Position numbers and translations under genes: made by a program. The notes beneath the pieces were generated by a model, which was given only the letters and a program-made list of their open reading frames with translations, searched no databases and had not been told where the DNA came from. Positions 27,724 to 63,140 of a DNA stretch of 64,000 nt are shown here, piece after piece. The stretch comes from Anthoceros angustus (Eukaryota; Plantae; Anthocerotophyta): contig VJWM01000068.1 in NCBI GenBank assembly GCA_010909165.1, forward strand, positions 1,488,001-1,552,000, in the 5' to 3' direction. How positions within the stretch are numbered: position 1 is the first letter of the stretch; the number at the start of each line of letters is the position of its first letter.

Positions 27724-27949
27724 ATGCCAAAGCCAAAGCATTTCAAGCATATGGCTGCCCTTGGGCTCGGAGTGTTCACTCACCCTCTGTATCGAGTTGA
27801 TATCTACCTTGTTGTCGTGGCGGGCTGTTGATTCTTATTGCCTATAGGGCTCTGGAGCTGCTCGCCTTCTTCTTCCACTCAAAATGATGTATTCATCCGC
27901 CAGTACTCTCAAAGGATGAAGCTACACTATGAAATCTAGGCGTGAGAGG

Positions 27950-30527
27950 TATCGGACATATGGGTCATGTTTTAGGAGGTCATATCTTTTTTTTCTTTTG
28001 TGATTTCTTGGTTGGGTTGTATTGAAGGTTCTAGTCATTTTCGCTTTCTTTTGTGAGGATTTTTGGTTTGTTTTGTTTAGCTTCGTTCTTTTTGGTTTTT
28101 CCTCTTTGTTTTGTTTTCCTTTTTATTTTGGGTTGGGTTGTAGTTGAAGGTTCGGTCTCTTTTAGGATAATTTTGAGGGTTTTTGGTTGTTTTGTCTCTA
28201 GTTTCTTAATTTTTGGGAGGTTATCAATGCTATTTTCCAATTTTTGGGTTGCGTTGTAGGTTCAATCTCTTTTTCAGATTTTGTGAGGGCTTTTGGTTCT
28301 CTTGTTTCTAGCTTCTTTAGGTTCCAATCTCTTTTCGAGGCTTTTGGTTCTCTTGTTTCTAGATTCTTTAGGTTCAATCTCTTATCGGATTTTGTGAGGC
28401 TTTTGGTTCTCTTGTTTCTAACCGTTTTTGGGAGGTTATTTCCTCTTTTGTTTATCTTTTCCTTTGTTATTTTGGGTTGGGTTGTAGAAGGTTGAGTCTC
28501 TTTTGATTTTGTGAGGGCTTTTGGTTGTTTTGTCTTTAGCTTCTTATTTTGGGAGGTTATCATTGTTATTTTTATTTTGGGTTGGGTTGTAGCTAAAGGT
28601 TCCAATCTCTTTTCGGATGTTTGTGGGGCTTTTGGTTCTCTTGTTTCTAGCTTCTTTTTTTGTGAGGTTATTTTGTTATTGTTTTCCTTTTGGGTTGGAT
28701 TGTAGTTGAAGGTCCAATCTCTTTTGATTTTGTGAGGCTTTTGGTTCTCTTGTATCTAGCTTCTTTAGGTTCCAATCTCTTTTTGGATTTTGTGAGGGCT
28801 TTTTGGTTCTCTTGTTTCTAGCTGCTTTAAGTTCCAATCTCTTTTCGGATTTTTGTGAGGGCTTTTTGGTTCTCTTGTTTCTAGTTTCTTTAGGTTCCAA
28901 TCTCTTTTCGGATTTTTGTGAGGGCTTTTTGGTTCTCTTGTTTCTAGCTTCTTATTTTGGGAGGTTATCATTGTTATTTTTATTTTTGGTTGGGTTGTAG
29001 TGAAGGTTCCAATCGGTCTTTAGATTTTGTGAGGTTTTTGATTGTTTTGTTTCTAGCTTCTTTTTGGGAGGTTATTTTGTTATTGTTTTCCTTTTGGGTT
29101 GGATTGTGAAGGTTCAGTCACTTTTGGATTTTTGAGGGCCTTGACCGTTTTTGGTTCTAGTGTCTCTTTTTGGGAGGTTATTTATTTTGCTTTTCTTTTT
29201 TTGTGATTTCTTGGTTGGGTGAAGGTTCTAGTCATTTTCGCTTTCGTGAGGATTTTTGGTTGTTTTGTTTCTAGCTTCGTTCTTTGGGACGTTTTTCCTC
29301 TTTGTTTTGTTTTCCTTTGTTATTTTGGGTTGTAGTGAAGGTTCGGTCTCTTTTCGGATAATTTTGAGGGCTTTTGGTTGTTTTGTCTCTAGTTTCTTAT
29401 TTTGGGAGGTTATCAATGCTATTTTCCAATTTTTGGGTCACCAGCTTTAGGTTCCAATCTCTTTTCGATTTTGTGAGGGCTTTTGGTTCTCTTGTTTCTA
29501 GCTTCTTAGGTTCCAATCTCTTTTGATTTTGTGAGGGCTTTTGGTTCTCTTGTTTCTAGATTCTTTAGGTTCCAATCTCTTTTTGGATTTTCGTGAGGGC
29601 TTTTGGTTCTCTTGTTTCTAGCCTCGCTTTTTGGGAGGTTATTTCTGTTTATCTTTTCCTTTGTTATAGTGAAGGTTGAGTCTCAGATTTTGTGAGGGCT
29701 TTTGGTTGTTTTTGTGTTTAGCTTCGGGAGGTTATCATTGTTATTTTATTTTGGGTTGGGTTGTAGCTAAAGGTTCCAATCTCTCGGATGTTTGTGGGGC
29801 TTTTTGGTTCTCTTGTTTCTCGCTTTGTTTTTGTGAGGTTATTTTGTTATTGTTTTCCTTTTAGGTTGGATTGTAGTTGAAGGTTCCAATCTCTTTTGAT
29901 TTTGTGAGGGCTTTTGGTTCTCTTGTATCTAGCTTCTTTAGGTTCCAATCTCTTTTTGGATTTTGTGAGGGCTTTTGGTTCTCTTGTTTCTAGTCATTTT
30001 AAGTTCCAATCTCGGATTTTGTGAGGGCTTTTTGGTTCTCTTGTTTCTAGCTTCTTTAGGTTCCAATCGGATTTTGTGAGGGCTTTTGGTTCTCTTGTTT
30101 CTAGCTTCTTATTTTGGGAGGTTATCATTGTTATTTTTATTTTTGGTTGGGTTGTAGGTGAAGGTTCCAATCGGTCTTTAGATTTTGTGAGGTTTTTGAT
30201 TGTTTTGTTTCTAGCTTCTTTTTGGGAGGTTATTTTGTTATTGTTTTCCTTTTGGGTTGGATTGTAGTGAAGGTTCCACCACTTTTGGATTTTTGAGGGC
30301 CTTGACCGTTTTTGGTTCTAGTGTCTCTTTTTGGGAGGTTATTTATTTTGCTTTCTTTTGTGATCTTTTGGTTGTTAGTGGATATCTTCCATTGCTTATG
30401 ATCATGAGATATCTCGTGTGGTCCTCGTCTAATCAAAGCAATGGGAGTAGGCAAGAGACTTGGCCTCGAGAGCTTTGCAACTCTCGAGTTTCAGGCCTCG
30501 GAGGCGTCTCTCAACAAGTGCAAGAGC
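27950..30527 (+). repeat. LTR-like segment of array unit 1 (PPT - T/G-rich block - CTCAACA - PBS remnant)
   Basis: Preceded by GTGAGAGG; starts T(G/A)TCGGACATATGGG; ends TCTCTCAACA (30516) followed by AGTGCAAGAGC, compared with canonical AGTGGTATCAGAGC. Other copies: 32567-33950, 35996-37422, 39734-41995, 44600-45989, 47900-50028, 61562-62924. Confidence 0.6.
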
Positions 30528-30541
30528 ACTTGTTTTTTGGT

Positions 30542-31116
30542 CCCATGTTGGATTACATTCCCACACATCTTTTCGAGCAAGCTTTCCCCATAAAAAACAA
30601 GGAGATCCCCTACATGTATATGGCGCCCAAGTCATATCAGGGTCCCCCAAAACGCCGACCTCCCCACCACATGAGGCTCAACGTGCACCACCTCACTTTT
30701 TGCCTGTCAGCAATAACCACAGAGCTTCCCTCCATAAAGATAGGGCTCAACTAAAGTTGGGGCCCCCAAAATCTTTCATGACCACCCACCACCCTCGGCG
30801 CAAACTTTTTGCTCCGCTTTCTTTAGGTTTGTAGAAACCCTTCTAAATAAGCCTTAAGTGGGGCCCCTCGGACCGCCAACCTTGACCCGTGCCCCACCAC
30901 CCCAGAGCAAACTACTTCTCACTTCCATATCGGTAACCATAAATCCCCACCTCCACATGTATAGCGCCCACCTTAAGTCAAGGCCCCTCGTGCCAACCTC
31001 ATATTCCTGGTGCCCCAACACCCCAGTCGCTCTTCTTCTTTCCTTTTGGTTTATCACTTCCCTCAAGAAGTGTCGCTTCCCTCAAAGCGATGTGTCGGAA
31101 TGTAATCCAACATGGG
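30542..31116. repeat. ~575-bp module bounded by inverted repeats (present in every array unit)
   Basis: CCCATGTTGGATTACATTCC at 30542-30561 and its exact reverse complement at 31097-31116, extending imperfectly to about 40 bp. Other copies at about 33975-34547, 37445-38001, 42014-42584, 46011-46554, 50051-50610, and truncated at 62950. Confidence 0.85.
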
Positions 31117-31359
31117 TATGCTCACACACGGAATGGCAATTCAAACTTTAGGAGGCGGGGTAATCTATGCTCTTGAAGAAGAGACGAGGAAGAGCCAAGC
31201 GACTTCCACCCCAACTCGTAGAGATACTAAGGAAGAAGTTGGGACGAAGGTCCTTGTTCTTTGATGACACCAACTCAAGATCTTACACCTTGTGAGAAAT
31301 GATCACCACTAACAACACACAATAGTCGATTGTTTTAAACTAAGCGAGACACTTGAATC

Positions 31360-31840
31360 TTGTGAGTCTAGACTCAAGCATCTCCTTTGAATAAGTCATG
31401 TTTTACCTTAGGGAGGGCTTTAGTAAGCGGTCAGTGCATTAGATCCGTGAGGATGTATTCAAACGGTCGACTTAAAGCGCATCTCGGATGAAATGGTAAT
31501 GAATCTCGATGTCCTTAGTGTGCGGGACTCATGGCGCGCGATTGTTGCGTCCGAGATTGTCGGTATGCGTGTCGGGTCCTCTCCCAAGACTCACGATGCC
31601 GCGGTGGAGCGATAACAGAAGGTTCCACATAACGTATAAAAATATGGTATATGGATTATATAAAATCGGTGGTTACATAGGACTTTGAGCCTCCTTTTGG
31701 CTTTTGGCTTCTATGGATTGAGTATTTGAACTAAGTTTTCTAGCTAGTGACCATGAAGCGACTTCATGTCATCGTAATGACCGTCAAATCGTACCATATG
31801 GTGATGGTATGTGAGTCATTCTTGCACCTTCACGGCTCAT
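31360..31840 (-). pseudogene. Degenerate copia RNase H (minus strand) within the array unit
   Basis: Composite over copies, clearest at 60330-60800 and 34870-35290: SWSLARKLSSNTQSIEAK...DNLG...ARTKDIEIHYHFIRDAL...LEYIPTGSNAADLLTKALPKVKHDLFK. Confidence 0.8.
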
Positions 31841-31879
31841 ACCTCGCCGAGATGACACCGCCACAGCCTTTGTGTCGCA

Positions 31880-32400
31880 CCTTCCACGTCGGTGTAGAGA
31901 TGTCAATGCTCACACTTGGGCACCACCACCTGCTGCTAGCACACTCCCGCCGGCCCACCCTCAGTGAAAACCACGAGGCACGCATGGCTAACCCCTCACC
32001 ATCCCTCCTTCACAATTGTCCCGGGCAAACGGATCCTCTATGAGAGGCGCCTCACGAACCGAGCAAGCGAGTCGCGCTTTCATCCACTAAAGTTGAGTAT
32101 AAGGCCACAGCGGGCGCATGGAAGGAGTTAGAGTGGGAAGGCAACTTTTGGAATGAATCCACTTACCTCAAAGTGCTCCCACTGCTTACAAGCATGTAGG
32201 CTATTGCCCTTTTTCCAATCCTTGGTTTCATGCAAGAACCAAGCACATTGAGCTAAACCACCATTATATCCATGGCGTGTTGAAAGGGGCATTGTGAAAG
32301 TGGAATACATTACAGTCGATGAGAATCTGACTAATATTTGTACAAAGGCTTGCCAAAGCCAAAGCATTTCAAGCATATGCTGCCCTTGGGCTCGGAGTGT
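31880..32400 (+). pseudogene. Degenerate copia RT-end/RNase H (plus strand) within the array unit
   Basis: ALSSTKVEYKA...WKELEWERQLLE...FSNPWFHARTKHIELNHHYIHG...VKVEYI..DEN..NI.TKGLPKPKHFKHMAALGL. Repeated in every unit, e.g. 35400-35820 and 60830-61390. Confidence 0.85.
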
Positions 32401-35400
32401 TCACTCGCCTCGTGTCGAGTTGATATCTACCTTGTTGTCGTGTGGACGTGATTCTTATTGCCTCTAGGGCTCTGGAGCTGCTCGCCTTCTTCCACTCAAA
32501 ATGATGTATTCATCAGCATCGGTACTCTCAAAGGATGAAGCTACTATGAAATCTAGGCGTGAGAGATGTCGGACATATGGGTCATGTTTTAGGAGGTCAT
32601 ATCTTTTCTTTTCTTTGTGATTTCTTGGTTGGGTTGTGGTGAAGGTTCTAGTCATTTTAAGCTTCTTTGTGAGGATTTTGGTTTGTTTTGTTTCTAACCG
32701 TTCTTTGGGACGTTTTTCCTCTTTTGTTTTGTTTTCCTTTGTTATTTTGGGTTGGGTTGTAGTTGAAGGTTCCGGTCTCTTTTCGGATAATTTTGAGGGT
32801 TTTTGGTTGTTTTGTCTCTAGTTTCTTATTTTGGGAGGTTATCAATGCTATTTTCCAATTTTTGGGTTGCGTTGTAGCTTTAGGTTCAATCTCTTTTGAT
32901 TTTGTGAGGGCTTTTGGTTCTCTTGTTTCTAGCTTCTTTAGGTTCAATCTCTTTTGGATTTTCGTGAGGGCTTTTGGTTCTCTTGTTTCTAGATTCTTTA
33001 GGTTCCAATCTCTTTCATTTTGTGAGGCTTTTGGTTCTCTTGTTTCTAACTTCTTTTGGGAGTTATTTCCTCTTTTGTTTTCTTTTCCTTTATTTTTTTG
33101 GGTTGTAGCTGAAGGTTCGAGTCTCTTTTGATTTTGTGAGGGCTTTTGGTTGTTTTTGTGTTTAGCTTCTTATTTTGGGAGGTTATCATTGTTATTTTTT
33201 TGGGTTGGGTTGTAGCTAAAGGTTCCAATCTCTTTTGGATGTTTGTGGGGGCTTTTGGTTCTCTTGTTTTTTTTTTTTTTGTGAGGTTATTTTGTTATTG
33301 TTTTCCTTTTGGGTTGGATTGTAGGAAGGTCCAATCTCTTTTGATTTTGTGAGGGCTTTTGGTTCTCTTGTATCTAGCTTCTTTAGGTTCCAATCTCTTT
33401 TGGATTTTTGTGAGGGCTTTTGGTTCTCTTGTTTCTAGGCTTTAAGTTCCAATCTCTTTTCGGATTTTTGTGAGGGCTTTTGGTTCTCTTGTTTCTAGCT
33501 TCTTTAGGTTCCAATCTCTTTTGATTTTGTGAGGCTTTTGGTTCTCTTGTTTCTAACTTCTTATTTTGGGAGGTTATCATTGTTATTTTTTATTTTTGGT
33601 TGGATTGTATAGGTTCCAATCGGTCTTTAGATTTTGTGGTTTTTGATTGTTTTGTTTCTAGCTTCTTTTGGGAGGTTATTTTGTTATTTTTTTTTCCTTT
33701 TAGGTTGGATTGTAATGAAGGTTCGAGTCTCTTTTGGATTTTTGAGGGCTTTTGGTTCTAGTGTCTCTTTTGGGAGGTTATTTATTTTGCTTTTTCTTTG
33801 TGATCTTTTGGTTGTTAGTGGATATCTTCCATTGCTTATGATCATGAGATATCTCGTGTGGTCCTCGTCTCATCAAAGCAATGGAGTAGGCAGACTTGGC
33901 CTCGAGAGCTTTGCAACTCTCGAGTTTCGGGACATCGGCGTCTCTCAACAAGTGCAAGAGCACTTGTTTTTGATCCCATGTTGGATTACATTCCACACAT
34001 CTTTTGAGCAAGCTTTCCCGTAAAAACAAGGAGATCCCTACATGTATATAGCGCCCAAGTCATATGGGGTCCCCAAAGCGCCGACCTCCCACCACATGAG
34101 GCTCAGCACACCTCACTTTTGCACATCGGCAATAACCACAGGCTTCCCTCCATAAAGATAGGGCTCAACTAAAGTTGGGGCCCCACATACCAAGCTCATG
34201 ACCACGTGCCCCACCACCCTCGGCGCAAACTTTTGCTCCGCTTTCTTTTGGGTTGTAGAAACCCTTCTAAATAACGCCTTAAGTGGGGCCCCTCGGACCG
34301 CCAACCTTGACCCACAGTGCCCCACCACCCGAGCAAACTACTTCTCACCACTTATATGTTGGTAACCATAAATCCCCACCTCCACATGTATAGCGCCCAC
34401 CTTAAGTCAAGGCCCCTCGAGCGCCAACCTCATATTCTGGTGCCCCAACACCCCAGTCGCTCTTCTCCTTTGCTTTCCTTTTGGTTTATCACTTCCCTCA
34501 AGAAGTGTCGCTTCCCTCAAAGCGATGTGAATGTAATCCAACATGGGTATGCTCACACAGAATGGCAATTTCAAACTATAGGAGAGCGGTAATCTATGCT
34601 CACGAGAAAGACATTGAGGAAGAGCCAAAGCACGACTTCCACCCCAACTCTTAGAGATACTAAGGAGAAGAAGTTGGGAGAAGGTCCTTGTTCTTTGATG
34701 ACACCAACTCAAGATCGACACCTTGTAGCAGAAATGATCACCACTAACAACACACAATTGTCGATTACATTAAAACTGCAGACACTTGAATGTTGTGTCT
34801 AAGACTCAAGCATCTCCTTTGAATAAGTCATGTTTTTACCTTAGGAGGGCTTTAGTAAGCGGTTTTGCATTAGATCCGTAGGGATGTATTCAAAACGGAT
34901 AAAGACGCATCTCGGATGAAATGGTAATGAATCTCGATGTCCTTAATGCGTGCACCGGGACTCATGGCGCGCATTGTTGCGTCGAGATTGTATGTGCGTG
35001 TCGGGGTCCTCTCCAAGACTCGATGCCGCGTGGAGCGATAACAGAAGGTTCCACATAGCATTATAAAAATATGGTATATGGATTATATAAAATCGTCGGT
35101 TAGGACTTTGAGCCTCCTTTGGCTTTTGGCTTCTATGGATTGAGTATTTGAACTAAGTTTTCTAGCTAGTGACCATGAAGCGGCTGTCATCGTAATGACT
35201 TCCATTCCATATGGTGATGGTATGTGAGTCATTCTTGCACCTTCACCAGGCTCATACCTCGCGGGGGCATGACACCAGCAGCTGTATCGCACCTTCCACG
35301 TCGATTATCACGAAGCCGGTCGTCAATGCTCTGCCCGGGCACCACCGGCCTGCACAGCGCTCAGGCACTTGTTGACGACAACCTCGCGATGAAAACACGA

Positions 35401-38400
35401 GGCGCATGGAAGCTAACCTCACCATCCCTCCCTTCACAATTGTCGAGCACGGATCCTCTATGTGAGAGGCGCCTCACGAACCGAGAAGCGGTCGCTTGCG
35501 CTTTCATCCACTAAAGTTGAGTATAAGGCCACAGCGGGGCGCATGGAAGGAGTTAGAGTGGGAAGGCAACTTTTGGAATGAATCCACTTACCTCAAAGTG
35601 CTCCCACTAAGCTTCTATGTGAAAGCATGTAGGCTATTGCCTTTTTCCAATCCTTGGTTTCATGCAAGAACCAAGCACATTGAGCTAAACCACCATTATA
35701 TCCATGGCGTCCTGAAAGGGGCATTGTGAAAGTGGAATACATGATCTTGATGAGAATTTAATATTTGTACAAAGGGCGCAAGCCAAAACATTTCAAGCAT
35801 ATGGCTGCCCTTGGGCTCGGGTGTTCTCTGCCCTCAGTCGAGTTGATATCTACCTTGTTGTCGGCGGCGGGCACATGATTCTTATTGCCTATAGGGCTCG
35901 GAGCTGCTCGCCTTCTTCTTGCTCAAAATGATGTATTCATGACATCGGTACTCTCAAGGATGAAGCTACACTATGAAATCTAGGCGTGAGAGGTATGTCG
36001 GACATATGGGTCATGTTTTAGGAGGTCATATCTTTTTCTTTTCTTTTGTGATTTCTTGGTTGGGTTGTAGCTGAAGGTTCTAGTCATTTTCGCTTTCTTT
36101 TGTGAGGATTTTGGTTTGTTTTGTTTCTAGCTTCGTTCTTTGGGACGTTTTTCCTCTTTGTTTTGTTTTCCTTTGTTATTTTGGGTTGGGTTGTAGTTGA
36201 AGGTTCGGTCTCTTTTCGGATAATTTTGAGGTTTTTGGTTGTTTTGTCTCTAGTTTCTTATTTTGGGAGGTTATCAATGCTATTTTCCAATTTTTGGGTT
36301 CGTTGTAGCTTTAGGTTCAATCTCTTTTGATTTTGTGAGCTTTTGGTTCTGTTGTTTCTAGCTTCTTTAGGTTCCAATCTCTTTTCGGATTTTCGTGAGG
36401 GCTTTTTGGTTCTCTTGTTTCTAGATTCTTTAGGTTCCAATCTCTTATCGGATTTTTGTGAGGGCTTTTTGGTTCTCTTGTTTCTAGCTTCGTTTTTTGG
36501 GAGGTTATTTCCTCTTTTGTTTATCTTTTCCTTTGTTATTTTTGGGTTGGGTTGTAGCTGAAGGTTCGAGTCTCTTTTCAGATTTTTGTGAGGGCTTTTT
36601 GGTTGTTTTGTCTTTAGCTTCTTATTTTGGGAGGTTATCATTGTTATTTTTTATTTTTGGGTTGGGTTGTAGCTAAAGGTTCCAATCTCTTTTGGATGTT
36701 TGTAGGGCTTTTTGGTTCTCTTGTTTCTAGCTTTTTTTTTGTGAGGTTATTTTGTTATTGTTTTCCTTTTGGGTTGGATTGTTGAAGGTCCAATCTCTTT
36801 TGATTTTTGAGGGCTTTTGGTTCTCTTGTATCTAGCTTCTTTAGGTTCCAATCTCTTTTGGATTTTTGTGAGGGCTTTTGGTTCTCTTGTTTCTAGTTGC
36901 TTTAAGTTCCAATCTCTTTTCGGATTTTGTGAGGGCTTTTGGTTCTCTTGTAGCTTCTTTAGGTTCCAATCTCTTTTGGATTTTTGTGAGGGCTTTTGGT
37001 TCTCTTGTTTTAGCTTCTTATTTTGGGAGGTTATCATTGTTATTTTTTATTTTTGGTTGGGTTGTAGCTGAAGGTTCCAATCGGTCTTTAGATTTTTGGT
37101 TTTTGATTGTTTTGTTTTAGCTTCTTTTTGGGAGGTTATTTTGTTGTTTTCCTTTTGGGTTGGATTGTAGGCAGAGGTTCAGTCACTTTTGGATTTTGTG
37201 AGGGCTTTTGGTTTGTTTGTTTCTAGTCTCTTTTGGGAGGTTATTTATTTTGCTTTTTCTTTTGTGATCTTTTTGGTTGTTAGTGGATATCTTCCATTGC
37301 TTATGATCATGAGATATCTCGTGTGGTCCTCGTCTAATCAAAGCAATGGGAGTAGGCAGAGACTTGGCCTCGAGAGCTTTGCAACTCTCGGTTTCGGGAC
37401 CGCCTCGGGGCGTCTCTCAACAAGTGCAAGAGCACTTGTTTTGTCCCATGTTGGATTACATTCCCACATCTTGAGCAAGCTTTCCCATAAAAACAAGGAG
37501 ATCCCTACATGTATATAGCGCCAAGTCATATCGGGTCCCCAAAGCCGACCTCCCACCACATGAGGCTCAACGTGCACCCTCACTTTTGCACATCGCAGCC
37601 AACCCGAGCTTCCCTCCATAAAGATGGGGCTCAACTAAAGTTGGGGCCCCACAATGTAAGCTTCGCACAGTGCCCCACCACCCCTCGGCCTTTTGCTCCG
37701 CTTTCTTTTGGGTTGTAGAAACCCTTCTAAATAACCTTAAGTGGGGCCCCCTGCCAACCTTGACCCTGGTGCCCCACCACCCCAGAGCAAACTACTTCTC
37801 ACTTCCATATCGGTAACCATAAATCCCCACCTCCACATGTATAGCGCCCACCTTAAGTCAAGGCCCTCGAGCGCCAACCTCATATTCACTGGTGCCCCAA
37901 CACCCCAGTCGCTCTTCTCCTTTGCTTTCCTTTTGGTTTATCACTTCCCTCAAGAAGTCGCTTCCCTCAAAGCGATGTGTCGGAATGTAATCCAACATGG
38001 GTATGCTCACACAGATGGCAATTTCAAACTATAGGAGGAGGGGCTCATGCTTTAAGAGACAGAGGAAGAGCCAAGCACGACTTCCACCCCAACTACGTAG
38101 AGATACCAAGGAGAAGAGTTAAGGGGTCCTTGTTCTTTGATGACACCAACTCAAGATCGACACCTTGTTGCGTGAAATGATCCTGCTAACAACACACAAT
38201 TGTCGATTCTGTTTTAAACTAAGCGAGACACTTGAATGTTGTAGGAGTCAAGACTCAAGCATCTCCTTTGAATAAGTCATGTTTTACCTTAGGGAGGGCT
38301 TTAGTAAGGAGGTCATTTGCGATCCCGTGAGGATGTATTCAAAACATCGACTTGGCATCTCGGATGAAATGGTAATGAATCTCGATGTCCTTAACTGCAC

Positions 38401-41400
38401 CGGGACTCATGGCGCCGCGATTGTTCGTCCCAGATTGTTATCGTGTCGGGGATCCTCTCCCAAGACTCCGATGCCCAGTGGAGCGATAACAGAAGGTTCC
38501 ACATAGCGTATAAAAATATGGTATATGGATTATATAAAATCGATTGGTTACAGGACTTTGAGCCTCCTTTGGCTTTGGCTTCTATGGATTGAGTATTTGA
38601 ACTAAGTTTTCTAGCTAGTGACCATGAGCGGCTTCATGTCATGTAGACTTCTGAGTAAGACCATATGGTGATGGTATGTGAGTCATTCTTGCACCTTCAC
38701 CAGCTCATACAGGAGGACACCTCAGCCGTATTACCGCACCACTGATATCTGGTTGAGAATGCTCACTGCTTGGGCACCACCACTGCAACAACTCACCTCC
38801 ACTTGTTGATGTCCTCACCGAGAACGAGGCACGCCATAATCACCATCCCTCCCTTTTGTCCGACCACGGATCCTCTATATGAAGGCCGCGTCCAAAAGAG
38901 CCAAGCGAGAACTTGGCTTTCATCCACTAAAGTTGAGTATAAGGAAGCAGCATGGAAGGAGTTAGAGTGGGAAAGGCAACTTTTGGAATGAATCCACCAC
39001 CTCAAAGTGCTCCCATTCTATGTGGCATGTAGGCTATTGCCCTTTTTCCAATCCTTGGTTTCATGCAGAACCAAGCACATTGAAATAAACCACCATTATA
39101 TCCATGGCGTGGCTGAAGGGCATTGTGAAAGTGGACATGATCGGTGAGAATCGTATTTGTACAAAGGGCGCAAAGCCAAAGCATTTCAAACATATGGCGT
39201 TGGGCTCGGAGTGTTCACTCGCCTCGTGTGTCAGTTGATATCTACCTTGTTGTCAGCCCAGCGGGCCTGATTCCTGCCTCGCTCTGGAGCTGCTCCGCCT
39301 TCTTTGCTCAAAATGATGTATTCATCAGCATGGTACTCTCAAAGGATGAAGCTACCTCAAAGTGCTCGAGGTTTCTGTGAAAGCATGTAGGCTATTGCCC
39401 TTTTTCCAATCCTTGGTTTCATGCAAGAACCAAGCATTGAGCTAAACCACCATTATATCCATGGCGTGGCTGAAGGTTCGGTCTCTTTTTTTTGTGAGGC
39501 ATCTTGATGAGAATCGACTAATATTTGTACAAAGGGCTTGCCAAAGCCAAAGCATTTCAAACTATAGTTGGGCTCAGTGTTCACTCGCCTCATATCGAGT
39601 TGATATCTACCTTATGGTTGTGGGCAGTGATTATTGCCATAGGGCTCGGAGCTGCTCGCCTTCTTCTTTCAAATGATGTATTCATACTCGTACTCTCAAG
39701 GATGAAACTCGCATGAAATCTAGGCGTGAGAGATATCGGATATATGGGTCATGTTTTAGGTCATATCTTTTCTTTTCTTTTGTGATTTCTTGGTTGGGTT
39801 GTAGCTGAAGGTTCTAGTCATTTTGACTTTCTTTGTGAGGATTTTGGTTTGTTTTGTTTCTAAACCACCATTCTTTGGGACGTTTTTCCTCTTTTGTTTT
39901 GTTTTCCTTTGTTATTTTGGGTTGGGTTGTAGTTGAAGGTTCGGTCTCTTTTGGATAATTTTGAGGGTTTTGGTTGTTTTGTCTCTAGTTTCTTATTTTG
40001 GGAGGTTATCAATGCTATTTTCCAATTTTGGGTTGCGTTGTAGCTTTAGGTTCCAATCTTTTTTTTGATTTTTTGGCTTTTGGTTCTCTTGTTTCTAGCT
40101 TCTTTAGGTTCAATCTCTTTTCGGATTTTTTTGAGGGCTTTTGGTTCTCTTGTTTCTAGATTCTTTAGGTTCCAATCTCTTATCGGATTTTGTGAGGCTT
40201 TTGGTTCTTGTTTCTAGCTTCTTTGGGAGGTTTTCCTCTTTTGTTTTCTTTTCCTTTATTATTTTGGGTTGGGTTGTAGTTGAAGGTTCGGTCTCTTTTG
40301 ATTTTGTGAGGCTTTTGGTTGTTTTTTTTGTTTTCCTTTATTATTTTGGGTTGGGTTGTAGTTGAAGGTTCAGTCTCTTTTCGAGATAATTTTGAGGGTT
40401 TTTGTTGTTTTGTCTCTAGTTTCTTATTTTGGGAGGTTATCAATGCTATTTTCCAATTTTGGGTTGCGTTGTAGCTTTAGGTTCCAATCTTTTTTTTGAT
40501 TTTTTGAGGCTTTTGGTTCTCTTGTTTCTAGCTTCTTTAGGTTCAATCTCTTTTCGGATTTTTTTTGAGGGCTTTTGGTTCTCTTGTTTCTAGATTCTTT
40601 AGGTTCCAATCTCTTATCGGATTTTGTGAGGCTTTTGGTTCTTGTTTCTAGCTTCTTTGGGAGGTTTTCCTCTTTTGTTTCTTTTCCTTTATTATTTTGG
40701 GTTGGGTTGTAGTTGAAGGTTCGGTCTCTTTTGATTTTGTGAGGCTTTTGGTTGTTTTTTTGTTTTCCTTTATTATTTTGGGTTGGGTTGTAGTTGAAGG
40801 TTCAGTCTCTTTTCGAGATAATTTTGAGGTTTTTGTTGTTTTGTCTCTAGTTTCTTATTTTGGGAGGTTATCAATGCTATTTTCCAATTTTGGGTTGCGT
40901 TGTAGCTTGGGTTCAATCTCTTTTTTGATTTTGTGAGGGCTTTTGGTTCTCTTGTTTCTAGCTTCTTTAGGTTCCAATCTCTTTTCGGATTTCGTGAGGG
41001 CTTTTGGTTCTCTTGTTCTAATTCTTTAGGTTCCAATCTCTTTTCGGTTGTGAGGGCTTTTGGTTCTCTTGTTTCTAATTTTTTGGGAGTTATTTCCTCT
41101 TTTGTTATCTTTTCCTTTGTTATTTTTGGTTGTTGTGGCTGAAGGTTCGAGTCTCTTTTGATTTTTGAGGGCTTTTGGTTGTTTTTGTGTTTAGCTTCTT
41201 ATTTTGGGAGGTTATCATTGTTATTTTTTATTTTGGGTTGGGTTGTAGAAGGTTCAATCTCTTTTCGGATGTTTGTGGGGGCTTTTGGTTCTCTTGTTTC
41301 GCTTTTTTTTGTGAGGTTATTTTGTTATTGTTTTCCTTTTGGGTTGGATTGTAGTTGAAGGTCCAATCTCTTTTGATTTTGTGAGGGCTTTTGGTTCTCT

Positions 41401-52358: not shown

Positions 52359-55300
52359 CGCGTTACTCATGGCGCCATCCGTGGCGTCATGTTTGCTTCA
52401 TTCGGTGGCTGCCTGGCTGGAGGGAGGCGGGAGTATACTCTTCTTGGTCGTTCAATCGGGCGGACTTATACCTTGTCGTGGCGACCAGGTTGTGGTGGCG
52501 GATGTAGTAGTTCCGACCACTGCGTGGCGCCACCTCCGCTCAGTCACTGCTCCCATCCAATGAGGCTGCTTTGCCGTCTGGCGGCTCTCAAGGTCCAAGT
52601 ATAGCGGGATGCAGCGGGCCACCTCTTTATCCGCTTGCTCTAAAGCGTATGGGGCAATGGTGTGGACTTTGACAAATTCATCAAGTCTTGTGCCAAAGCT
52701 TACCATGCGCTGCAGCAGTGTATCGTCCTCTGATTACAAAGATACTCCGGCTGGTTTCTATTGCTCTTCAAATGGCGCCTCAACGCGATTCTCCATAAGG
52801 CGGCGGCGGTGGGTGATGCCTTTCCTCTTCCTCTCGTGGTTTTGCCGCTTATTCTACTCGTGATATGACATTGTGGGTGCGCTTGGTCACTTTAGGTAGG
52901 AGCTCATTGTTCCTCTTCACTCGAATCGGTCCCCATTTGTTGTCCCTTCCTAGATGGTCTCTTTCCATCGTTCTTTCACCTCAATAAATCATCTCTTTCG
53001 TTATTACTTATAGTTATTATATCTAGCTATCTAGTGTATGTGTGTATATAGCTTTAATTTATTTAGCTTACCCTTTCATTAGGGTTACGTCCCTAGGCCA
53101 AAGGTCATGTCTCTTGGCTACTAGAATAAGTCTAGTTGCTACAATCAATTTACCAATGCTTTCTTGTTTTTCTACAATAATGTAATTGATAAATACTCAA
53201 TTGGTTTGCACCATTTCCATATTTCGTAATGGTATAAGAGCAATGCTAGGTGCAGATTGCATTCACAAGAATGCACATTAAATTGTGCACATGTTGATGT
53301 GCATAAAATGTTCTTTGTGTTTGTTTCTTGATTAGAAATTAGTTTCTAATAAGAAATCAAGAAAATGTTTGAGAAACCTTTTGTAGCTATTTTTGCTTGA
53401 TTTGTTAATAGAAATTTTGCATTTCTAGAGTTCTAGCGATCATCGCCGATTGTTGCAAAGCAATCATCATCGACACGCTAGAACGATCGCCAAGTGGCAA
53501 ATATCTTTATAAAATCATATAAAATTACAATATGTTTCTTGGAATTTTCCAAAACACAAGAATTTCGCCAAATGAATGGCCGATCCTCGGGAGGCGGATG
53601 CGGCTGGATGGCGAATCGCCAAATACAACATGGTGCAAGAAGAGCGCAGTGAGAAGAACTCCCGATCTTCACCATCGTGCGCCCACCGAGGACTCCACAA
53701 TCTCCCAAATGTGCAACCCGCCATTGTTGGTAACGGCAATCCTCGGGGTTTCCTAACCACAAACGTAGCACCACATACCAAAGATCACACATTTAAGTTC
53801 TAGACTAGAATCACAACGACATGTAGATGACGCTTTGAAAACATAAGTCGAAAGCTGCTTCGAGGACTTACAATCGTTGTCGGATCGATTGGTCACTTGG
53901 ATTTCAAATTGCTTGCTTTGTTGAGGCCTCGCTCTTCTTGCTAACCTCGCAATCGAGGGATGCTTGTAAGCATGCTACAAAACTAACAAGCATCACAAAT
54001 TTGAGAATCCAAACTCGTGTCCATCTGCATGACCTATTCCTTTAATCGGGAGATTAGGAAACACAACATAAGGAAAAGGTAGATAGGAGTTGGTCAATTT
54101 GCATGACCAACGATCAACCCATCTTACCTCAGAACGGCTGCATTTGCAGCCACCCCGATGCACGTAGCATCATAACTCTTCTCTCGAATCCTCACACTGT
54201 AGCACAGGTCACACGTGCATTAGAAATTCATCCATAAAATCCTCACCGTGAGGGGACTAACAGTCCTAAACATGGGTGACTCTAATTTAGCCGGGAGGAT
54301 TCAAAGAGAAGGATAGATTCAGGTGATTATGACATCCGGGTACTTAGAATGCGTGGTGCCCTTCAAAACAAGCAGGGTTCATGGGACGCCAAAGTCTCAG
54401 AATCGTGGCACCCCTCACCGATCAAGGCACTTGATGCTTGGACCACAGGAAGGCACAGTTCCTCCTACGGAGTGGTCGTCGACCGACATGTTGAGACAGA
54501 CCTGTTGCAAAACCTCACCGATATTTGGACGCTGCTCCAAAGTCTATTTGGGAACCGATGACACAAGTCAAATGACAAAGACTTGCAACATACAAAACTT
54601 GAAGATGAAAGAAGGAGAATCCATTGAAAACACGACTACCTTCGATCCCTAGTCTCCAAGTTTGAAAGTGCCGCATGTGATAGTGTGAAGGACCGGCTCT
54701 CATTCTTCATTTCATGATGTCACTCCGAATCTTGGGCACATTTCGTGACCTCATTCAACACCTCGCAACTACAAGGGCGGAAGATTGCCCAGCCGCAGTG
54801 TTGATCTCCCAAAACAACATTTGCAGAATTAGTGGGAGCTCTTCGTGAAGAAGTCACAAGAGGACAATTCAAACGTCCGTAAATGCAAGCTTTGTACACT
54901 AACAACAAAGGAAAGGGCAAGAAGCCCAACTTCGGTAGACAAAATACCTCGGTGCTAGTAGCTCGCGAGTCTCTACACCAAGAAGCCAAGAAGGCTGGAA
55001 AGTGCCACTGGTGCCAAATTCCGTGCCATTGGGAGTCCGAGTGTCGAAGAAGCGAGTACCTCGCAAGGAGGGCAACTCCACTTCTACACATGTTGTGGTG
55101 ACTAACAAGGCTACCCCTCACCGTAGGGACCAGGAGTTTTCCTACCCTCTTGCTAACCCCACATGCTTGTCTGCAAATACTCAAGGCAAACCCATACAGG
55201 AGTGGTTCCTTGATGTGCAAACAAGACATCTGCTTATTGTGGTTCATATGTGTTAGTTCACAACAGATTTGTTTACCTAGGTGACGATAGTAGGCTTCGT

Positions 55301-58300
55301 GCTGGTGTTGGCACCGCTGTTACTGTCCTTCGTGCATCACACTCTTGCTTACAGATGTGTATCATGTGCCCGAAATGACAAGAAACTTGATTGTTAGAAG
55401 GTTGAACATGGATAATCAAAGTCACATCCTCTTCACTCCGGCTGTAATGTAGGATTATAGATGCTTTTGATCATCGCAAAATCCTAGCCTATGGATCATC
55501 CGACCATGATCTCTTTAGATCGACACTCACACCACCATGCCAAGGCTAGCCTAGCTTCAAGGTCGCTCGAGAGCAAAGCAAGAAGAACAAGCTAGGTTAT
55601 GGCATGCACGCTTAGGTCACCCTCACAACAAGAAAGTTGCAAAAACTAGTGCTAGTGACTGCACAAAGGATGGTAAAATTGGCGGTTGCCATCCTTACCT
55701 CTGTGAAGCTGTGTCCAAACGTCATCAAGCACCTTCAAGAACAAGACTCCTCACGAGCTTCAAGTGCTTGAACTTGTGCACATCGACATATGTGGGCCAC
55801 TCGCGACCCTCAATCGGTGGTGGCGATACTTCCTCATATCTGCTGCACAAGACGAGATTTGTCATGGCTTACATCTTGAAAGCTAAAAGTGAATGCTTCT
55901 CTCTCAAAGACTACATGAAACTTGCGAGAGATGGACGGAAAATCGAAAGTCCTACGCTCGACAATGGTGGAGAATTCACATCTAATTCCGCACTCAGTAA
56001 GGACGAAGGATAGGCGGACAACTTACAGCTTGTGTATACGCAATGTAATGGCGCTGCCGAGCGCTTGAACTTGACACTGCAGGAGATGGTCTCTATGCTT
56101 CACCAAGCCTCTTTGCCACTATCCCATCGGGCCAAGCTTATGACATGTGTATTTACGTAATGCATCGCAACCGCCGTGTGGATTGGACGACTTTGAAGCT
56201 TTCTATGGGCGCAAGCCGCTATCCAACATCTTCGCACTTTCGGATGCATCGCTTTTGCTTTCATCCCTAAGGCCAAGCGAACCAAGTTAGTGCTAAGGCC
56301 AAGAAGTACCTCATGATAGGATACATCAAGGTATAAAAGCTTATGTCGGTATGACGACTCGTAACAAGGTGGTCTATGCACGAGCGTGACCTTTGATGAA
56401 GGTCGAACTTGGCGCAAGTGGGAGCTACTCCCAGTGGAGGACTTTGATCTTTCGCCTCGACGCCATTGTTTTCGATGATTACGCTCTTGCGGAGATTGCT
56501 CTGCGGGGAAGAACAAGAAATGATGCTCGGAGCAAGGAGATGAACCGAAAATTTTGTTGAACATTTGCGAAGAACCTCCTCCAGCTGCGTAACGAACCAT
56601 GACCTTTTACGATCCACGGACCCGATCCACGGACCCGATCCACATTGACGAGGATGAGGTCAAGATGCTCATCTTCGACAAGGATGCCGAGGTTGAACTC
56701 GAGATTCAACCCTTGCAAGCTCCACCACAACCCGAGCGCCGTTATCCTGCAAGAGATAGACGGGCACCAGATCATTATCACACAGGACTTTAGAAAACCA
56801 ACAGCTAATGCAGCCACTTCCCTGGATCCTATCGAACCTCAATCCTACGAAGAAGCTCTTAGCCGTCCTGATGCTGCAGAGTGGAAAAAGGCAATTCAAT
56901 TAGAATATGATTCGCTGATCAAAAATGGAACATGGGAACTAGCTAAGTTACCTCCTGGACGTAAGGTGGTGTCTTGCAAGTGGGTCTTCAAACTGAAGGT
57001 AAAGGCTGATGGAAGTTTTGATAGGTACAAAGCACGACTTGTAGCTCGTGGCTTTTCGCAAGTGCCTGGTCTCGATTACTTCGAAACATATGCTCGTGAT
57101 GAAGGCCACCTTTTACAACTGTGCCCGGCAAGACATCAAGACTACGAGTTAGACATGTTTGATGTAAAGACCGCATTTTACATGGCAAGTTGGACACCGA
57201 AATCTACATGCACAGCCTCGTGATACAAGTAAAAGGCAAGGAAGATCATGTCTTGCGCCTAATAAAACCCTCTATTCAAGCAATCAGATTAGAGTGGAAT
57301 GCCTGGATGAAGAACTGCACTTGGATTCGTGAAATGTGTTTGAGCGTATGTTTACAGATCCGTGACGTTGTGTGCTATCTCGCAGTGTATGTTGATGATT
57401 TGATTCTATCCGCAATAGCTCCACATTCATCACCAAAGTTAACAAGCCGCTATCTACCAAGTTTGAAATGACTAACCTTGGAGCACTTGAGTGCACAGGA
57501 ATCCTTATTCGAGAGGATAGAAAAGATCTATATCTCTCACATGACCTCGATACATTAGAATGTGCAATAAATTGGCTTGAAGGATGCAACCAGCGCGACT
57601 CCACCGCCATCCGGATGAAATTTAGCAAGTCCATGTGTCCCGAAACCAAAAGGACATAGAAGACATGAGGTCGGTCCCCTCATGTAAAGGGAGTTGGCAA
57701 ACTTATCTATGCCGCCAACACTACACGACGATGTAGCCTACACCACAAGTGTGCTCGCAATACTCGAGAACCCCGGTCAAACGCACCGGATCGGGTGTTA
57801 AGAGGGTGGTTAGGTATCCAAGGAACATCCAACATTGGGATTCGATTCAGACACATACCTGGCACACCACTTGAGCTGGACGTATATACTGACTCCGATT
57901 ATGCTGGTGACATAGATACACGGAGGTCAGTGTTTGGGTACTTTGTCATGGTGGCAGGAGGGCCCATATGCTGGTCAAGCAAGAAGCAACCAACAGTTGC
58001 AACTTCCAGCACTGAAGCTGAATGTCGGGTCCTCACATCTGCTGCTAAAGAAATAGCTTGGTGCAAGCTAATGTTTAAGGAGCTGGGATTGCCACTCCCT
58101 ACTTGCACCACTATTAGAACCGACAACCAAGGATCCATGAACTGGCCAAGAACCCCTGCTTTTCACTCCCGCAAGCACGTGGAAGTGGAATACCACTTCA
58201 TTAGGGATCTTATCAAATCAGTCGATTACACCGAGTATGTACCAACAGACAATCCAGCAGATTTGTTCACAAAAGCCCCGAGTAGGGACGCACACAACAG

Positions 58301-59717
58301 CACATGAAAAGTTTGGGCATGGGCAGCCACGAGGGCTACCAGAGGCCAAGCAAAACCAATCCTAACCTAGCCTATGAGCTAGGAAAGCCCCAATCATTAC
58401 TCCCATCGGATCATCATAGCAGAGAGATAGAAGGGACCTCCTACTCATGAGTAGAGGAGTCTCAAATCTTCTCCCAAGATGCATAGTGTCCGATGAAGTA
58501 GAGAATGTCTCACCACCAACGAGGGAGTTTCTTCTCTTTCTCTCCTCGTAGGAGATCCTCTCCTTGGTGCCTGCCTCCTCGCCTAAGCTGCCTCGATCCC
58601 GTGAGGGGCGAGTGGGAGCTGTAGGAAAAGGTAGTGAATTCATGCCGATGACTGCAGGGGTTTAGGAAAAATTGGCAACTAAATGTGGCGTAAAGGATTC
58701 TCGCCCAAACAGAAGAGTAATACTTACTATAGAAGCTTATGATGTGGTCATCAAAGCCCCGAGCCTGGACACGGACTCTCACCATCTTCAGCCCGTGACC
58801 AAGCACTGCACTCAAATAGGCTGCCTGGGAACCGAGCACAACCGAGGGTAACAATTTTCGCCTCCGACGACTGCTCTAGGCTCGGGAACTTGGGTGGTGC
58901 AGGAGGATGTGGCTCGCCAGATGCATACTTGAACTCACCCTTCTCGCACCGCATCAAACGAAGCTCGAGAAAATAATCGGCTTACAGGCTGGGTGCAGGC
59001 GACGAGGTGGAGCTCCCATCTCGGTCTTCTGCAGGGCTCTTGCTCCACTTGCGCACTGCCCGGGCGCCGCCCTCAAGCAGGCGTCTGTTTTTCGCTCGCC
59101 TGGGCGCGGCCCGCCAAGACTCCACTGTGCCGCTGAGTGGTTACTCCCTTTGCCTCACTCGGGAGATGGAGGTCGCAGCGCAAACCTACCTAGAGCATCC
59201 CTCCGTAGACACGGCTGGTGTGAGGACAGTCCACAGACTCAAGATGAAGACATCTTGCCTAGGAGCTTCACGCCTAGAAGTCGTGGAAAGAATGAAGACC
59301 GAACGTAAAGGCAAGCTATTATGCTTATGGCACACCTGCAGGCCGCTTCACGAGCGCTCCATTACGCTTGGGGCTGGGTCACAACTGTACACACACACGC
59401 CTCAAGCTCAACTCACATGCACAAGGTGCTCATGAGAAGAAGACACTATGCAATAATCAACAAGTGGGAGTATTGAAGATAGAGTGTTGAGTTATTACTT
59501 ATTATTATATCTAGCTATCTAGTGTATGTGTGTATATAGCTTTAATTTATTTAGCTTACCCTTTCATTAGGGTTACGTCCCTAGGCCAAAGGTCATGTCT
59601 CTTGGCTACTAGAATAAGTCTAGTTGCTACAATCAATTTACTAATGCTTTCTTGTTTTTCTACAATAATGTAATTGACAAATACTCAATTGGTTTGCACC
59701 ATTTCCATATTTCGTAA
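52092..59717 (+). mobile_element. Near-full-length Ty1/copia retrotransposon (LTR-gag-PR-INT-RT-RH-LTR), frameshifted
   Basis: TSD GCTCA at 52087-52091 and 59718-59722. 5' LTR 52092-53229 (interrupted), PBS TGGTATAAGAGC 53230-53241. Coding motifs: zinc knuckle CHWCQIPCHWESEC, EWFLD, HIDICGP, DNGGEFTS, EPQSYEEA...VSCKWVFKLK...YKARLVARGFSQ, VYVDDL, TDSDYAGDIDTRRS...WSSKKQ. PPT AAGTGGGAG, then 3' LTR 59471-59717. Confidence 0.95.
52123..52999. mobile_element. 877-bp unclassified insertion in the copia 5' LTR
   Basis: Absent from the 3' LTR. Flanked by the direct repeat GTTATTACTTA (52112-52122 and 53000-53010). No TIR or poly(A). One end has a tandem CTCTC(C)GGGTCCACTA. Confidence 0.8.
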
Positions 59718-59742
59718 GCTCACACACGGAATGGCAATTCAA

Positions 59743-60360
59743 ACTATAGGAGGAAGCAGGGGTAATCTATGCTACTGAAGAGAAAGACACTGAGGAAGAG
59801 TCAAAGCACGACTTCCACCCCAACTACGTAGAGATACTAAGGAGAAGAAGTTGGACAGGGTCCTTGTTCTTTGATGACACCAACTCAAGATCGACACCTT
59901 GCCAGTAGAAATGATCACCGCTAACAACACACAATAGTCGGTGCTTTTAAACCAGACACTTGAATGTTGTAGAGTCTAAGACTCCAAGCATCTTTCTATG
60001 ATAAGCTACCGACCTAAAAACTCCTACTCTTGTTGTGGTTAGGTAGCTCAAGAGCTCCCACTAATTGTCTCATGCGTGTTGTGACCAATGTCAAGGGACA
60101 AACTATAGGAGGAAGTAGGTAATCTATGCCATCAAGAGAAGACATTGAGGAAGAGCCAAAGACTTCCACCCCAACTACGTAGAGATACTAAGGAGAAGAA
60201 GTTGGGACAGAAGGTCCTTGTTCTTTGATGACACCAACTCAAGATCTGACACCTTGTAGCACTGTAGAAATGATCACCCTGCTAACAACACACAATTGTC
60301 AGTTCTTTTTTAAACTAAGCAGACACTTGAATGTTGTAGGAGTCTAAGACTCCAAGCATC
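59743..60360. repeat. ~250-bp duplication with a ~110-bp unrelated spacer
   Basis: AAACTATAGGAGGAAG...AAGACTCCAAGCATC at 59743-59992 and 60101-60360. Confidence 0.8.
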
Positions 60361-63140
60361 TCCTTTGAATAAGTCATGTTTTTACCTTAGGGAGGGCTTT
60401 AGTAAGCAGGTCAGCTGCATTAGATCCCGTAGGGATGTATTCAAGATGATCGACTTAAAGCGCATCTCGGATGAAATGGTAATGAATCTCGATGTCCTTG
60501 GTACGTGCACCGGACTCATGGCGCGCGATTGTTGCGTCCGAGATTGTCGGTATGCGTCGGGAGTGTCCTCTCCCAAGACTCGATGCCCGCGAGTGAGCGA
60601 TAACTTAAGAAGGTTCCACATAACGTATAAAAAATATGGTATATGGATTATATAAAATGGGTCATTACATAGGACTTTGAGCCTCCTTTGGCTTTGGCTT
60701 CTATGGATTGAGTATTTGAACTAAGTTTTCTAGCTAGTGACCATGAAGCGACTTCATGTCATCGTAATGACTTCGGTGCACGTACCATATGGTGATGGTA
60801 TGTGAGTCATTCTTGCACCTTCAGAGCTCATACCTCGCCGGGCATGACACCGCCGCACTGTGTCGCACCTTCCACGTCGATGTCAAGCCCGTCCAATGCT
60901 CCGCACTTGGGCACCACCACAACCGCACACTCCGACACTTGCCCAGCGACAACCTCACCGATGAAAACACGAGGCACGCATGGAAAGCTAACCCCTCACC
61001 ATCCCTCCCTTCACAATTGTCCGCAAACGGATCCTCTATATGAGAGCCTCACGAACCGAGCCAAGCGAATTGCGCTTTCATCCACTAAAGTTGAGTATAA
61101 GGCCACATAATGGAAGGAGTTAGAGTGGGAAAGGCAACTTTGGAATGAATCCACTTACCTCAAAGTGCTCCCACTAAGCTTCTATGTGAAAGCATGTAGG
61201 CTATTGCCCTTTTTCCAATCCTTGGTTTCATGCAAGAACCAAGCACATTGAGCTAAACCACCATTATATCCATGACGCCGAAAGGGGCATTGTGAAAGTG
61301 GAATACATTAGTCTTGATGAGAATACTAATAATTTTACAAAGGGCGCCAAAGCCAAAGCATTTCAAGCATATGGCTGCCCTTGGGCTCGAGTTCACTCGC
61401 CTCAGACGAGTTGATATCTACCTTGTTGTCGTGGCCGAGCTGTTGATTCTTATTGCCTCTAGGGCTCTGGAGCTGCTCGCCTTCTTCCCGCTCAAAATGG
61501 CGTATTCATCGATCCGGTACTCTCAAAGGATGAAGCTACACTATGAAATCTAGGCGTGAGAGGACATATGGGTCATGTTTTAGGAGGTCATATCTTTTTC
61601 TTTTCTTTGTGATTTCTTGGTTGGGTTGTAGAAGGTTCTAGTTTTTCGCTTTCTTTGTGAGGATTTTGGTTTGTTTTGTTTCTAGCTTCTTTGGGACGTT
61701 TTTCCTCTTTGTTTTGTTTTCCTTTGTTTTTGGGTTGGGTTGTAGTTGAAGGTTCTCTTTTATAATTTTGAGGGTTTTTGGTTGTTTTGTCTCTAGTTTC
61801 TTATTTTGGGAGGTTATCAATGCTATTTTCCAATTTTTGGGTTGCGTTGTAGCTTTAGGTTCCAATCTTTTGATTTTGTGAGGGCTTTTGGTTCTCTTGT
61901 TTCTAGCTTCTTTAGGTTCCAATCTCATTTTCGTGAGGGCTTTTTGGTTCTCTTGTTTCTAGATTCTTTAGGTTCCAATCTCTATCGGATTTTCGTGAGC
62001 TTTTGGTTCTCTTGTTTCTAACCGTTTTGGGAGGTTATTTCCTCTTTGTTTATCTTTTCCTTTGTTATTTTGGGTTGGGTTGTAGAAGGTTCGAGTCTCT
62101 TTTGATTTTGTGAGGGCTTTTGGTTGTTTTGTCTTTAGCTTCTTATTTTGGGAGGTTATCATTGTTATTTTTATTTTGGGTTGGGTTGTAGCTAAAGGTT
62201 CCAATCTCTTTTCGGATGTTTTAGGGGGCTTTTGGTTCTCTTGTTTCGCTTTTTTTGTGAGGTTATTTTTGTTATTGTTTTCCTTTTGGGTTGGATTGTA
62301 GTTGAAGGGTCCAATCTCTTGTCGATTTTGTGAGGGCTTTTGGTTCTCTTGTATCTAGCTTCTTTAGGTTCCAATCTCTTTTCGGATTTTGTGAGGGCTT
62401 TTGGTTCTCTTGTTCTTTAAGTTCCAATCTCTTTTCGGATTTTGTGAGGGCTTTTGGTTCTCTTGTTTCTAGCTTCTTTAGGTTCCAATCTCTTTTCGGA
62501 TTTTGTGAGGGCTTTTGGTTCTCTTGTTTCTAGCTTCTTATTTTGGGAGGTTATCATTTATTTTTTTTATTTTTTTGGTTGGGTTGGTTCCAATCGGTCT
62601 TTAGATTTTGTGAGGTTTTTGATTGTTTTGTTTCTAGCTTCTTTTTGGGAGGTTATTTTTGTTATTGTTTTTCCTTTTGGGTTGGATTGTGGTGAAGGTT
62701 CCACTTTTGGATTTTTGAGGGCCTTGACCGTTTTGGGAGGTTATTTATTTTTGCTTTCTTTTGTGATCTTTTTGGTTGTTAGTGGATATCTTCCATTGCT
62801 TATGATCATGAGGTATCTACGTGTGGTCCTCGTCTAATCAAAGCAATGGGAGTAGGCAGAGACTTGGCCTCGAGAGCTTTGCAACTCTCGAGTTTCGGAC
62901 CGCCTCGGGAGGCGTCTCTCAACAAGTGCAAGAGCACTTGTTTTTTGGTCCCATGTTGGATTACATTCCCACACATCTTTTCGAGCAAGCTTTCCCATAA
63001 AAACAAGGAGATCCCTACATGTATATAGCACTCAAGGGGGGTCCCCAAAGCCCGACCTCCCCACCACATGAGGCTCAACGTGCACCACCTCACTTTTTGC
63101 TGTCGGCAATAACCAGAGCTTCCTCCATAAAGATAGGGCT

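Follow-up and report, generated by a model that had tools for sequence, protein, structure and literature searches.

Potato centromeric repeats and Sobo are partly derived from long terminal repeat (LTR) retrotransposons. In maize, the tandem repeats CRM1TR and CRM4TR come from the LTR/untranslated region (UTR) end of retrotransposons, were amplified by recombination and were later invaded (Sharma et al., 2013, PMC3648361), and in Lathyrus the 3' UTR of LTR retrotransposons of the Ogre (Tat) group contains tandem subrepeats that give rise to satellites (Vondrak et al., 2020, PMC7004042). Plant satellite monomers can exceed 5 kb in length (PMC7004042, citing Gong et al., 2012). Here we consider a locus of the non-seed plant Anthoceros angustus, a head-to-tail array of units of about 3.4 kb lying in a 64,000-nucleotide stretch of contig VJWM01000068.1 (assembly GCA_010909165.1, positions 1,488,001 to 1,552,000 of the forward strand; hereafter the window, in which all positions are counted). 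With a probability that we put at roughly 0.65, the array results from head-to-tail amplification, at the DNA level, of transposable element (TE) debris into a methylated macrosatellite.

Self-BLAST of the window and alignment of the boundary sequences delimited six full units and a seventh, partial one of 1.8 kb (Table 1), confirming the array and the location given for it by an earlier reading of the sequence alone (the original prediction). Offsets between matching segments are 3.3-4.8 kb and multiples thereof, and the basic period is 3326-3429 bp, in agreement with the predicted unit of about 3.4 kb; units 2 and 5 are the simplest, and units 1, 3 and 4 are longer through private internal duplications. 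A tandem, TE-derived monomer extends over tens of kilobases (at least 6.5 units, 35.4 kb). The 35-kb span ascribed to the macrosatellite held, its purity did not: about 10 kb belong to a nested copia element and to local duplications, and the array proper amounts to approximately 25 kb once these are subtracted.

The coding remnants were located by tblastn with two queries, both from the window, namely the RNase H piece of the young copia nested at 52-59 kb and the RNase H open reading frame (ORF) at 14437-15009. Each full unit contains a minus-strand and a plus-strand C-terminal fragment of copia RNase H, both truncated on the 5' side; in the last pair the best E values were 2.7e-08 and 5.5e-07 for the minus fragment and 8.9e-13 for the plus fragment. 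Compared with the 14437 ORF, the plus fragment shows 62% identity and the minus fragment 51%; compared with the young copia, the values are 35% and 58%, respectively, and no inverted DNA similarity was found between the two fragments. Because the lineage identities differ and inverted similarity is lacking, the fragments represent different copia lineages (copia A on the plus strand, copia B on the minus strand), joined at their 5'-truncated sides; as had been foreseen, 3' ends from two distinct copias, one on each strand, are thus recovered. A palindromic duplication of a single copia is ruled out, since the RNase H fragments share no inverted DNA similarity. The "RT-end" assigned to copia A by the original prediction did not materialize: no match to reverse transcriptase (RT) with E below about 1 was obtained by tblastn in any unit, and neither tblastn nor Pfam, run on ten unit ORFs, revealed RT, integrase or gag similarity in any of them. 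These ten ORFs had no Pfam match at all, Pfam having no model of copia RNase H. Demonstrable copia pol 3' ends account by tblastn for about 800 of the 3430 bp of a unit, and the neighbouring remainder (the minisatellite, an inverted-repeat module and about 850 bp) resembles UTR sequence, its origin being unproven.

The ORF at 14437-15009 is itself an intact, stand-alone RNase H fragment of 190 aa, with neither RT nor integrase upstream. The ESM Atlas groups it with streptophyte clusters automatically named "RxLR effector 161-like", a name often given in error to fragments of copia RNase H, and a search of PDB sequences with the RNase H ORF as query gave chance matches only.

Directly past the plus-strand pol stop lies a T-rich minisatellite of 1.2-2.4 kb, with periods of about 60 and 110 bp according to Tandem Repeats Finder (TRF) and an AT skew between -0.44 and -0.64. 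A hypervariable 60/110-bp tandem repeat immediately downstream of the pol stop, differing in length from copy to copy, recalls the Ogre/Tat elements, but the element concerned here is a copia, and it is the whole 3.4-kb block, not a subrepeat, that has been amplified.

The minisatellite is followed by the inverted-repeat (IR) module, whose presence in the unit had been correctly anticipated. It ends in perfect inverted arms of 19 nt, which extend to about 35 nt at 86% identity in unit 2 and at 91-94% in the other units, and encloses 535 nt with degenerate internal subrepeats of about 110-123 bp. The 19-nt arm is exact in 14 of its 15 occurrences, vs. 0.03 expected by chance. The module has the terminal inverted repeats of a miniature inverted-repeat transposable element (MITE); no obvious target-site duplication flanks the arms, and no copy of the module was found outside the array within the 64-kb window. 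Each arm (e.g., 30542-30576 and 31082-31116) is found 220-310 bp beyond the point where the pol frame of the adjacent copia fragment stops, and has the same orientation with respect to that fragment. Instead of being MITE ends, the two arms could thus be one motif that both opposed copias carry in their 3' regions.

The resemblance to CRM1TR and CRM4TR lies in the derivation of the monomer from the end of an LTR retrotransposon, in amplification at the DNA level (by illegitimate recombination and gene conversion in CRM) and in a later heterologous insertion, here of the young copia. Unlike these repeats, each of which stems from one centromeric Ty3/gypsy family, the Anthoceros unit brings together the opposite-strand ends of two unrelated Ty1/copia elements, a minisatellite and an IR module; the host is, moreover, a non-seed plant. 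With the kilobase-monomer satellites of plants the array shares a monomer of several kilobases, partly of retrotransposon origin, and an extent of tens of kilobases.

Unit 6 is the only one to host the young Ty1/copia. This element was inserted 8 bases to the right of the IR module and is framed by a duplicated 5-bp target, GCTCA (52087-52091 and 59718-59722), and its LTRs of 247 bp are 97.8% identical over 230 aligned bp; in Pfam it matched RVT_2 (E 2.9e-14), and gag_pre-integrs at 27.6 bits, slightly short of the curated threshold of 28.4. An insert of about 880 bp (52123-52999) interrupts the 5' LTR beyond its first 31 bp. The 736-bp composite that is present here in three tandem copies consists of ~490 bp from the right-hand side of the IR module, the 8 bp that flank the module there, the same initial 31 bp of the 5' LTR and about 216 bp of this insert. 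Because the composite spans the junctions between array, copia LTR and nested insert, the triplication can only be a tandem duplication at the DNA level that followed both insertions. It is younger than a copia with LTRs 97.8% alike and yet shows 87% identity; the identity that we measure is taken as a lower bound. Copies 1 and 2 are 100% identical over 252 bp (50619-50870 and 51365-51616), CG-rich clusters included, vs. only 66-90% in their remainder, and copy 3 differs at the CG clusters; the perfect stretch may be an artefact of assembly or polishing, or may be unmethylated. Local duplications occur at five scales, each private to one unit, and the triplication together with the private duplications of units 1, 3, 4 and 6 constitutes the main support for a DNA-level mechanism.

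The units are 82-91% identical in pairwise comparisons, with more gap columns (6.5-10.7%) than mismatches (1.8-7.2%). In a six-copy alignment of 792 columns, substitutions were singletons in 77 columns vs. shared in 24, and the corresponding figures for indels were 115 and 54; the shared variants occur in every pairing of copies, do not divide the copies consistently and carry no tree signal. Deviations from the column majority, counted in a 750-bp non-coding stretch, amounted to 0.19-0.20 per cell at CG/CHG vs. 0.064-0.070 elsewhere, and dropped from 0.177 at CG/CHG sites to 0.041 at a distance of at least 10 nt. Deletions are the commonest class of difference, and transitions are about as frequent as transversions. 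Stretches without any variation, up to 37 columns long, are interspersed with CG-rich clusters garbled differently in each copy, and with rising CG/CHG load the number of units, out of five, that share an exact 16-mer declines from 2.34 to 0.27. This pattern fits a long-read assembly with base-calling errors at methylated cytosines; the differences between copies would then be mostly sequencing noise, the true identity higher than measured, and the array DNA is probably methylated. Real deamination decay as the origin of the CG/CHG-linked differences was discarded, deletions and transversions together exceeding transitions.

In the proposed amplification, the starting debris would have comprised the 3' end of copia A (RNase H end, pol tail, and UTR with the T-rich minisatellite), the 573-bp IR module and, in opposite orientation, the 3' end of an unrelated second copia. 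This block would probably have been multiplied by unequal crossing-over or by slippage during replication, possibly followed by homogenization, and single units would later have undergone the copia insertion with target duplication, minisatellite expansions and local duplications of 0.36-1.2 kb. A heterochromatic satellite born from a TE nest, one of the two outcomes that the original prediction had envisaged, is in keeping with the evidence.

Some observations weigh against this reading. The amplification mechanism is deduced from the anatomy of one locus only, and at 10 nt or more from CG/CHG the copies still deviate by about 4% per cell, which indicates some real divergence or another source of noise. 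A count of 6.5 units is not an integer, contrary to what simple duplication of one segment would yield. Both array edges adjoin other repeats: on the left, an LTR element abuts the first array base, and since no partner LTR was found within the window this element is truncated or rearranged; on the right lies a repeat, R. We explain the non-integer count by TE insertions at both visible edges, each with one half only in the window. The succession of a copia RNase H, 0.7-0.9 kb of sequence and repeat R recurs in the window (14.4-16.5 kb and 61.1-64.0 kb): the R copy at 15878-16519 stands 870 bp downstream of the RNase H ORF 14437-15009, and at the array end R follows the pol stop of copia A at a distance of about 735 bp when the minisatellite is not counted. 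R may therefore be the native continuation, or far 3' part (perhaps LTR), of the copia A lineage, or else a separate repeat. If R is native to copia A, the right edge is the true end of the array, and the origin of the IR module is left unexplained.

The same edges and the same lack of tree signal bear on another possibility, that the array was formed off the chromosome by rolling-circle replication of a one-unit extrachromosomal circle, the concatemer then being integrated. Start and end phases are arbitrary and unlike each other, and simultaneous birth of the units would leave no tree-like signal among them. However, the edges coincide with TE-like sequences, which account for the phases without circles, noise explains the missing tree signal equally well, and direct evidence of circles was not encountered; we regard this origin as unlikely.

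It is very unlikely, in our estimation, that the array or its local duplications are largely an artefact of noisy long-read assembly, with a true copy number lower than or different from the one assembled. The array sequence is visibly error-laden, and independent noise would not be expected to leave the first two copies of the triplication identical over 252 bp and 10-34% different elsewhere. On the other hand, large private features, such as the 7.6-kb copia of one unit, the minisatellite lengths and the duplications, argue for distinct physical copies, and random error does not yield a periodic structure of this length.

The original prediction had further recognized in each unit the signature of head-to-tail LTR elements sharing their LTRs, with a remnant of the primer-binding site (PBS). 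Like such arrays, including those of terminal-repeat retrotransposons in miniature (TRIMs), the locus repeats its unit head to tail and has one segment in common at its two visible ends (27725-30748 and 61346-63141). A PBS of the tRNA-iMet type occurs at 53230, right after the 5' LTR of the nested copia (1 mismatch), and on the minus strand at 27457-27468, in the left flank (exact), and no match with up to 2 mismatches was found in any array unit. When 3 mismatches were allowed, the total of 29 matches was below the shuffle mean of 46.8, and the sole recurring match sat within the minus-strand RNase H fragment; the PBS remnant is consequently not supported. LTR termini were not found in the array units, and purine runs reached only 10-12 nt, were ambiguous and occupied positions fitting no consistent model of a polypurine tract (PPT). 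As for the edges, the array opens two bases before a frame reading PKPKHFKHMAALGLGV, open for 34 codons in translation; its start precedes the stop of a pol reading frame by about 40 codons. Because residues 155-179 of the 14437 ORF align by tblastn across the unit start at 44378 (44359-44430), and because in other units the pol-tail frame directly continues the RNase H homology, the array start falls within the coding tail of the copia A pol, where no LTR ends; the assignment rests on tblastn, translation and frame continuity, the 24-aa tail being too short for BLASTP against the 14437 ORF to inform. The array ends 192 bp into the IR module, and no common 5-mer that could represent a target duplication frames it. 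With its start in the pol tail and its end in the IR module, the segment at the two array ends does not behave as an LTR. The unit interior, finally, is not one collinear element: opposite-strand RNase H fragments of different lineages are accompanied by no detectable gag, protease, integrase or RT.

These results bear on the case of a head-to-tail, non-autonomous LTR retroelement whose neighbours share one LTR, whether through unequal LTR-LTR recombination or aberrant reverse transcription. Calling the end segment P and the intervening sequence Q, the (PQ)nP form expected of such an array is present, and a weak PPT-like motif before the IR module resembles the sequence that precedes the 3' LTR of the young copia. 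Unlike shared-LTR and TRIM arrays, though, the locus yielded none of the features sought here (PBS, LTR termini, array-flanking target duplication, collinear interior), P begins in the pol tail and ends in the IR module and not at recognizable TG...CA termini, the two bona fide LTR elements of the window have a PBS with 0-1 mismatch, and since the edges abut other repeats the (PQ)nP form can be accidental. The tandemly propagating, non-autonomous retroelement proposed beforehand is not supported, neither PBS and LTR termini nor RT, integrase and gag having been found, and we hold a shared-LTR origin to be highly improbable.

Table 1. Positions of the array, its units and parts, and adjoining features in the window.
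Feature	Position	Strand	Evidence	Equivalents and remarks
Whole array	27725-63141	.	Self-BLAST, boundary alignment	Interrupted by nested copia
Unit 1, 4626 bp	27725-32350	+	Self-BLAST, landmark mapping	Minisatellite block doubled (27986-29217 matches 29190-30374; 1.2 kb)
Unit 2, 3429 bp	32351-35779	+	Landmark mapping, tblastn	Simplest full unit
Unit 3, 3759 bp	35780-39538	+	TRF, landmarks	Tandem duplication of ~360 bp at 39025-39706, over copia A RNase H and pol tail
Unit 4, 4839 bp	39539-44377	+	TRF, landmarks	Minisatellite expansion, 431 bp x 3.7 (39893-41517); ~600-bp spacer/copia A duplication
Unit 5, 3326 bp	44378-47703	+	Self-BLAST, landmarks
Unit 6, 13.6 kb	47704-61345	+	Self-BLAST	Enlarged by nested copia and two local duplications
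Unit 7, partial	61346-63141	+	Boundary alignment, landmarks	Pol tail, minisatellite, pre-IR segment, first 192 bp of IR module; cut at 63141
Unit 2, final part of copia A pol reading frame	32351-32470	+
Unit 2, short UTR-like stretch	32471-32600
Unit 2, T-rich minisatellite	32601-33799	+	TRF, AT skew, landmarks	27984-30359, 36030-37263, 39761-41834, 44634-45846, 47932-49870, 61592-62762
Unit 2, pre-IR segment, 175 bp	33800-33974
Unit 2, IR module, 573 bp	33975-34547	.		30542-31116, 37445-38001, 42014-42584, 46011-46554, 50052-50610, 62950-63141 (cut)
Unit 2, post-IR segment, 320 bp	34548-34870
Unit 2, copia B RNase H C-terminal fragment	34871-35310	-	tblastn	31398-31891, 38276-38710, 42862-43300, 46810-47253, 60380-60881
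Unit 2, spacer	35311-35480
Unit 2, copia A RNase H C-terminal fragment	35481-35779	+		Runs on into pol tail of next unit
Copia A RNase H fragment with pol tail	35481-35897	+	tblastn, translation	Crosses unit boundary; 32071-32470, 38896-39254, 43514-43898, 44091-44501, 47435-47813, 61069-61465; tail only 27725-27850
Young Ty1/copia nested in unit 6	52092-59717	+	RVT_2, gag_pre-integrs, PBS 53230-53241, LTR pair
Three tandem copies of 736-bp composite	50131-52358	+	Self-BLAST and alignments
Local ~385-bp duplication of post-IR segment	59714-60361	+		Right of nested copia
Left flank, LTR element	27457-27724	-		LTR-like end of ~256 bp and exact tRNA-iMet-type PBS; abuts first array base
Right flank, repeat R	63142-64000	+		69-77% like 15878-16519

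A second tandem repeat of kilobase scale occupies 18181-23223, with a unit of 1.9 kb in about 2.6 copies that are 92% identical, differences dominated by indels and a C-rich plus strand; its ORFs had no Pfam match. It points to a general propensity for tandem amplification, not to a TE-specific mechanism. Elsewhere in the window, an alpha-glucan phosphorylase exon (3885-4292, plus strand) is best matched by the plastidial/cytosolic enzymes of plants (E about 1e-39 vs. at least 1e-23 in other kingdoms), and an intact ORF of 366 aa encodes a RING protein (C3HC4_3; 7074-8174, minus strand); both are about 20 kb from the array, which is thus not far from genes. Scans of the whole window with Rfam at gathering thresholds and for tRNAs returned nothing. 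In scans of metagenome contigs no exact match turned up to either a 37-mer that six units share unchanged or a 30-mer of the minisatellite core, and neither of two window ORFs was present when looked up exactly in a protein collection.

The tandem-repeat scan of the Anthoceros genome paper was capped at periods of 2 kb, and no centromeric satellites were found (PMC8075897). Because of this cap multi-kilobase arrays would escape such scans, and there is a slim chance that the present array is one of a genome-wide class of methylated multi-kilobase macrosatellites that could represent the missing repeats of heterochromatin or centromeres, this one having been seeded by a copia graveyard. The apparent copy divergence of 10-15% in the assembly would be largely technical and concentrated at CG/CHG, and the dating and classification of repeats must allow for it. 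The locus displays tandem duplication at the DNA level at six scales, from 60 bp to 3.4 kb, and the array, as we read it, is one more transposon graveyard turned satellite, a course previously described for maize, legumes and potato.

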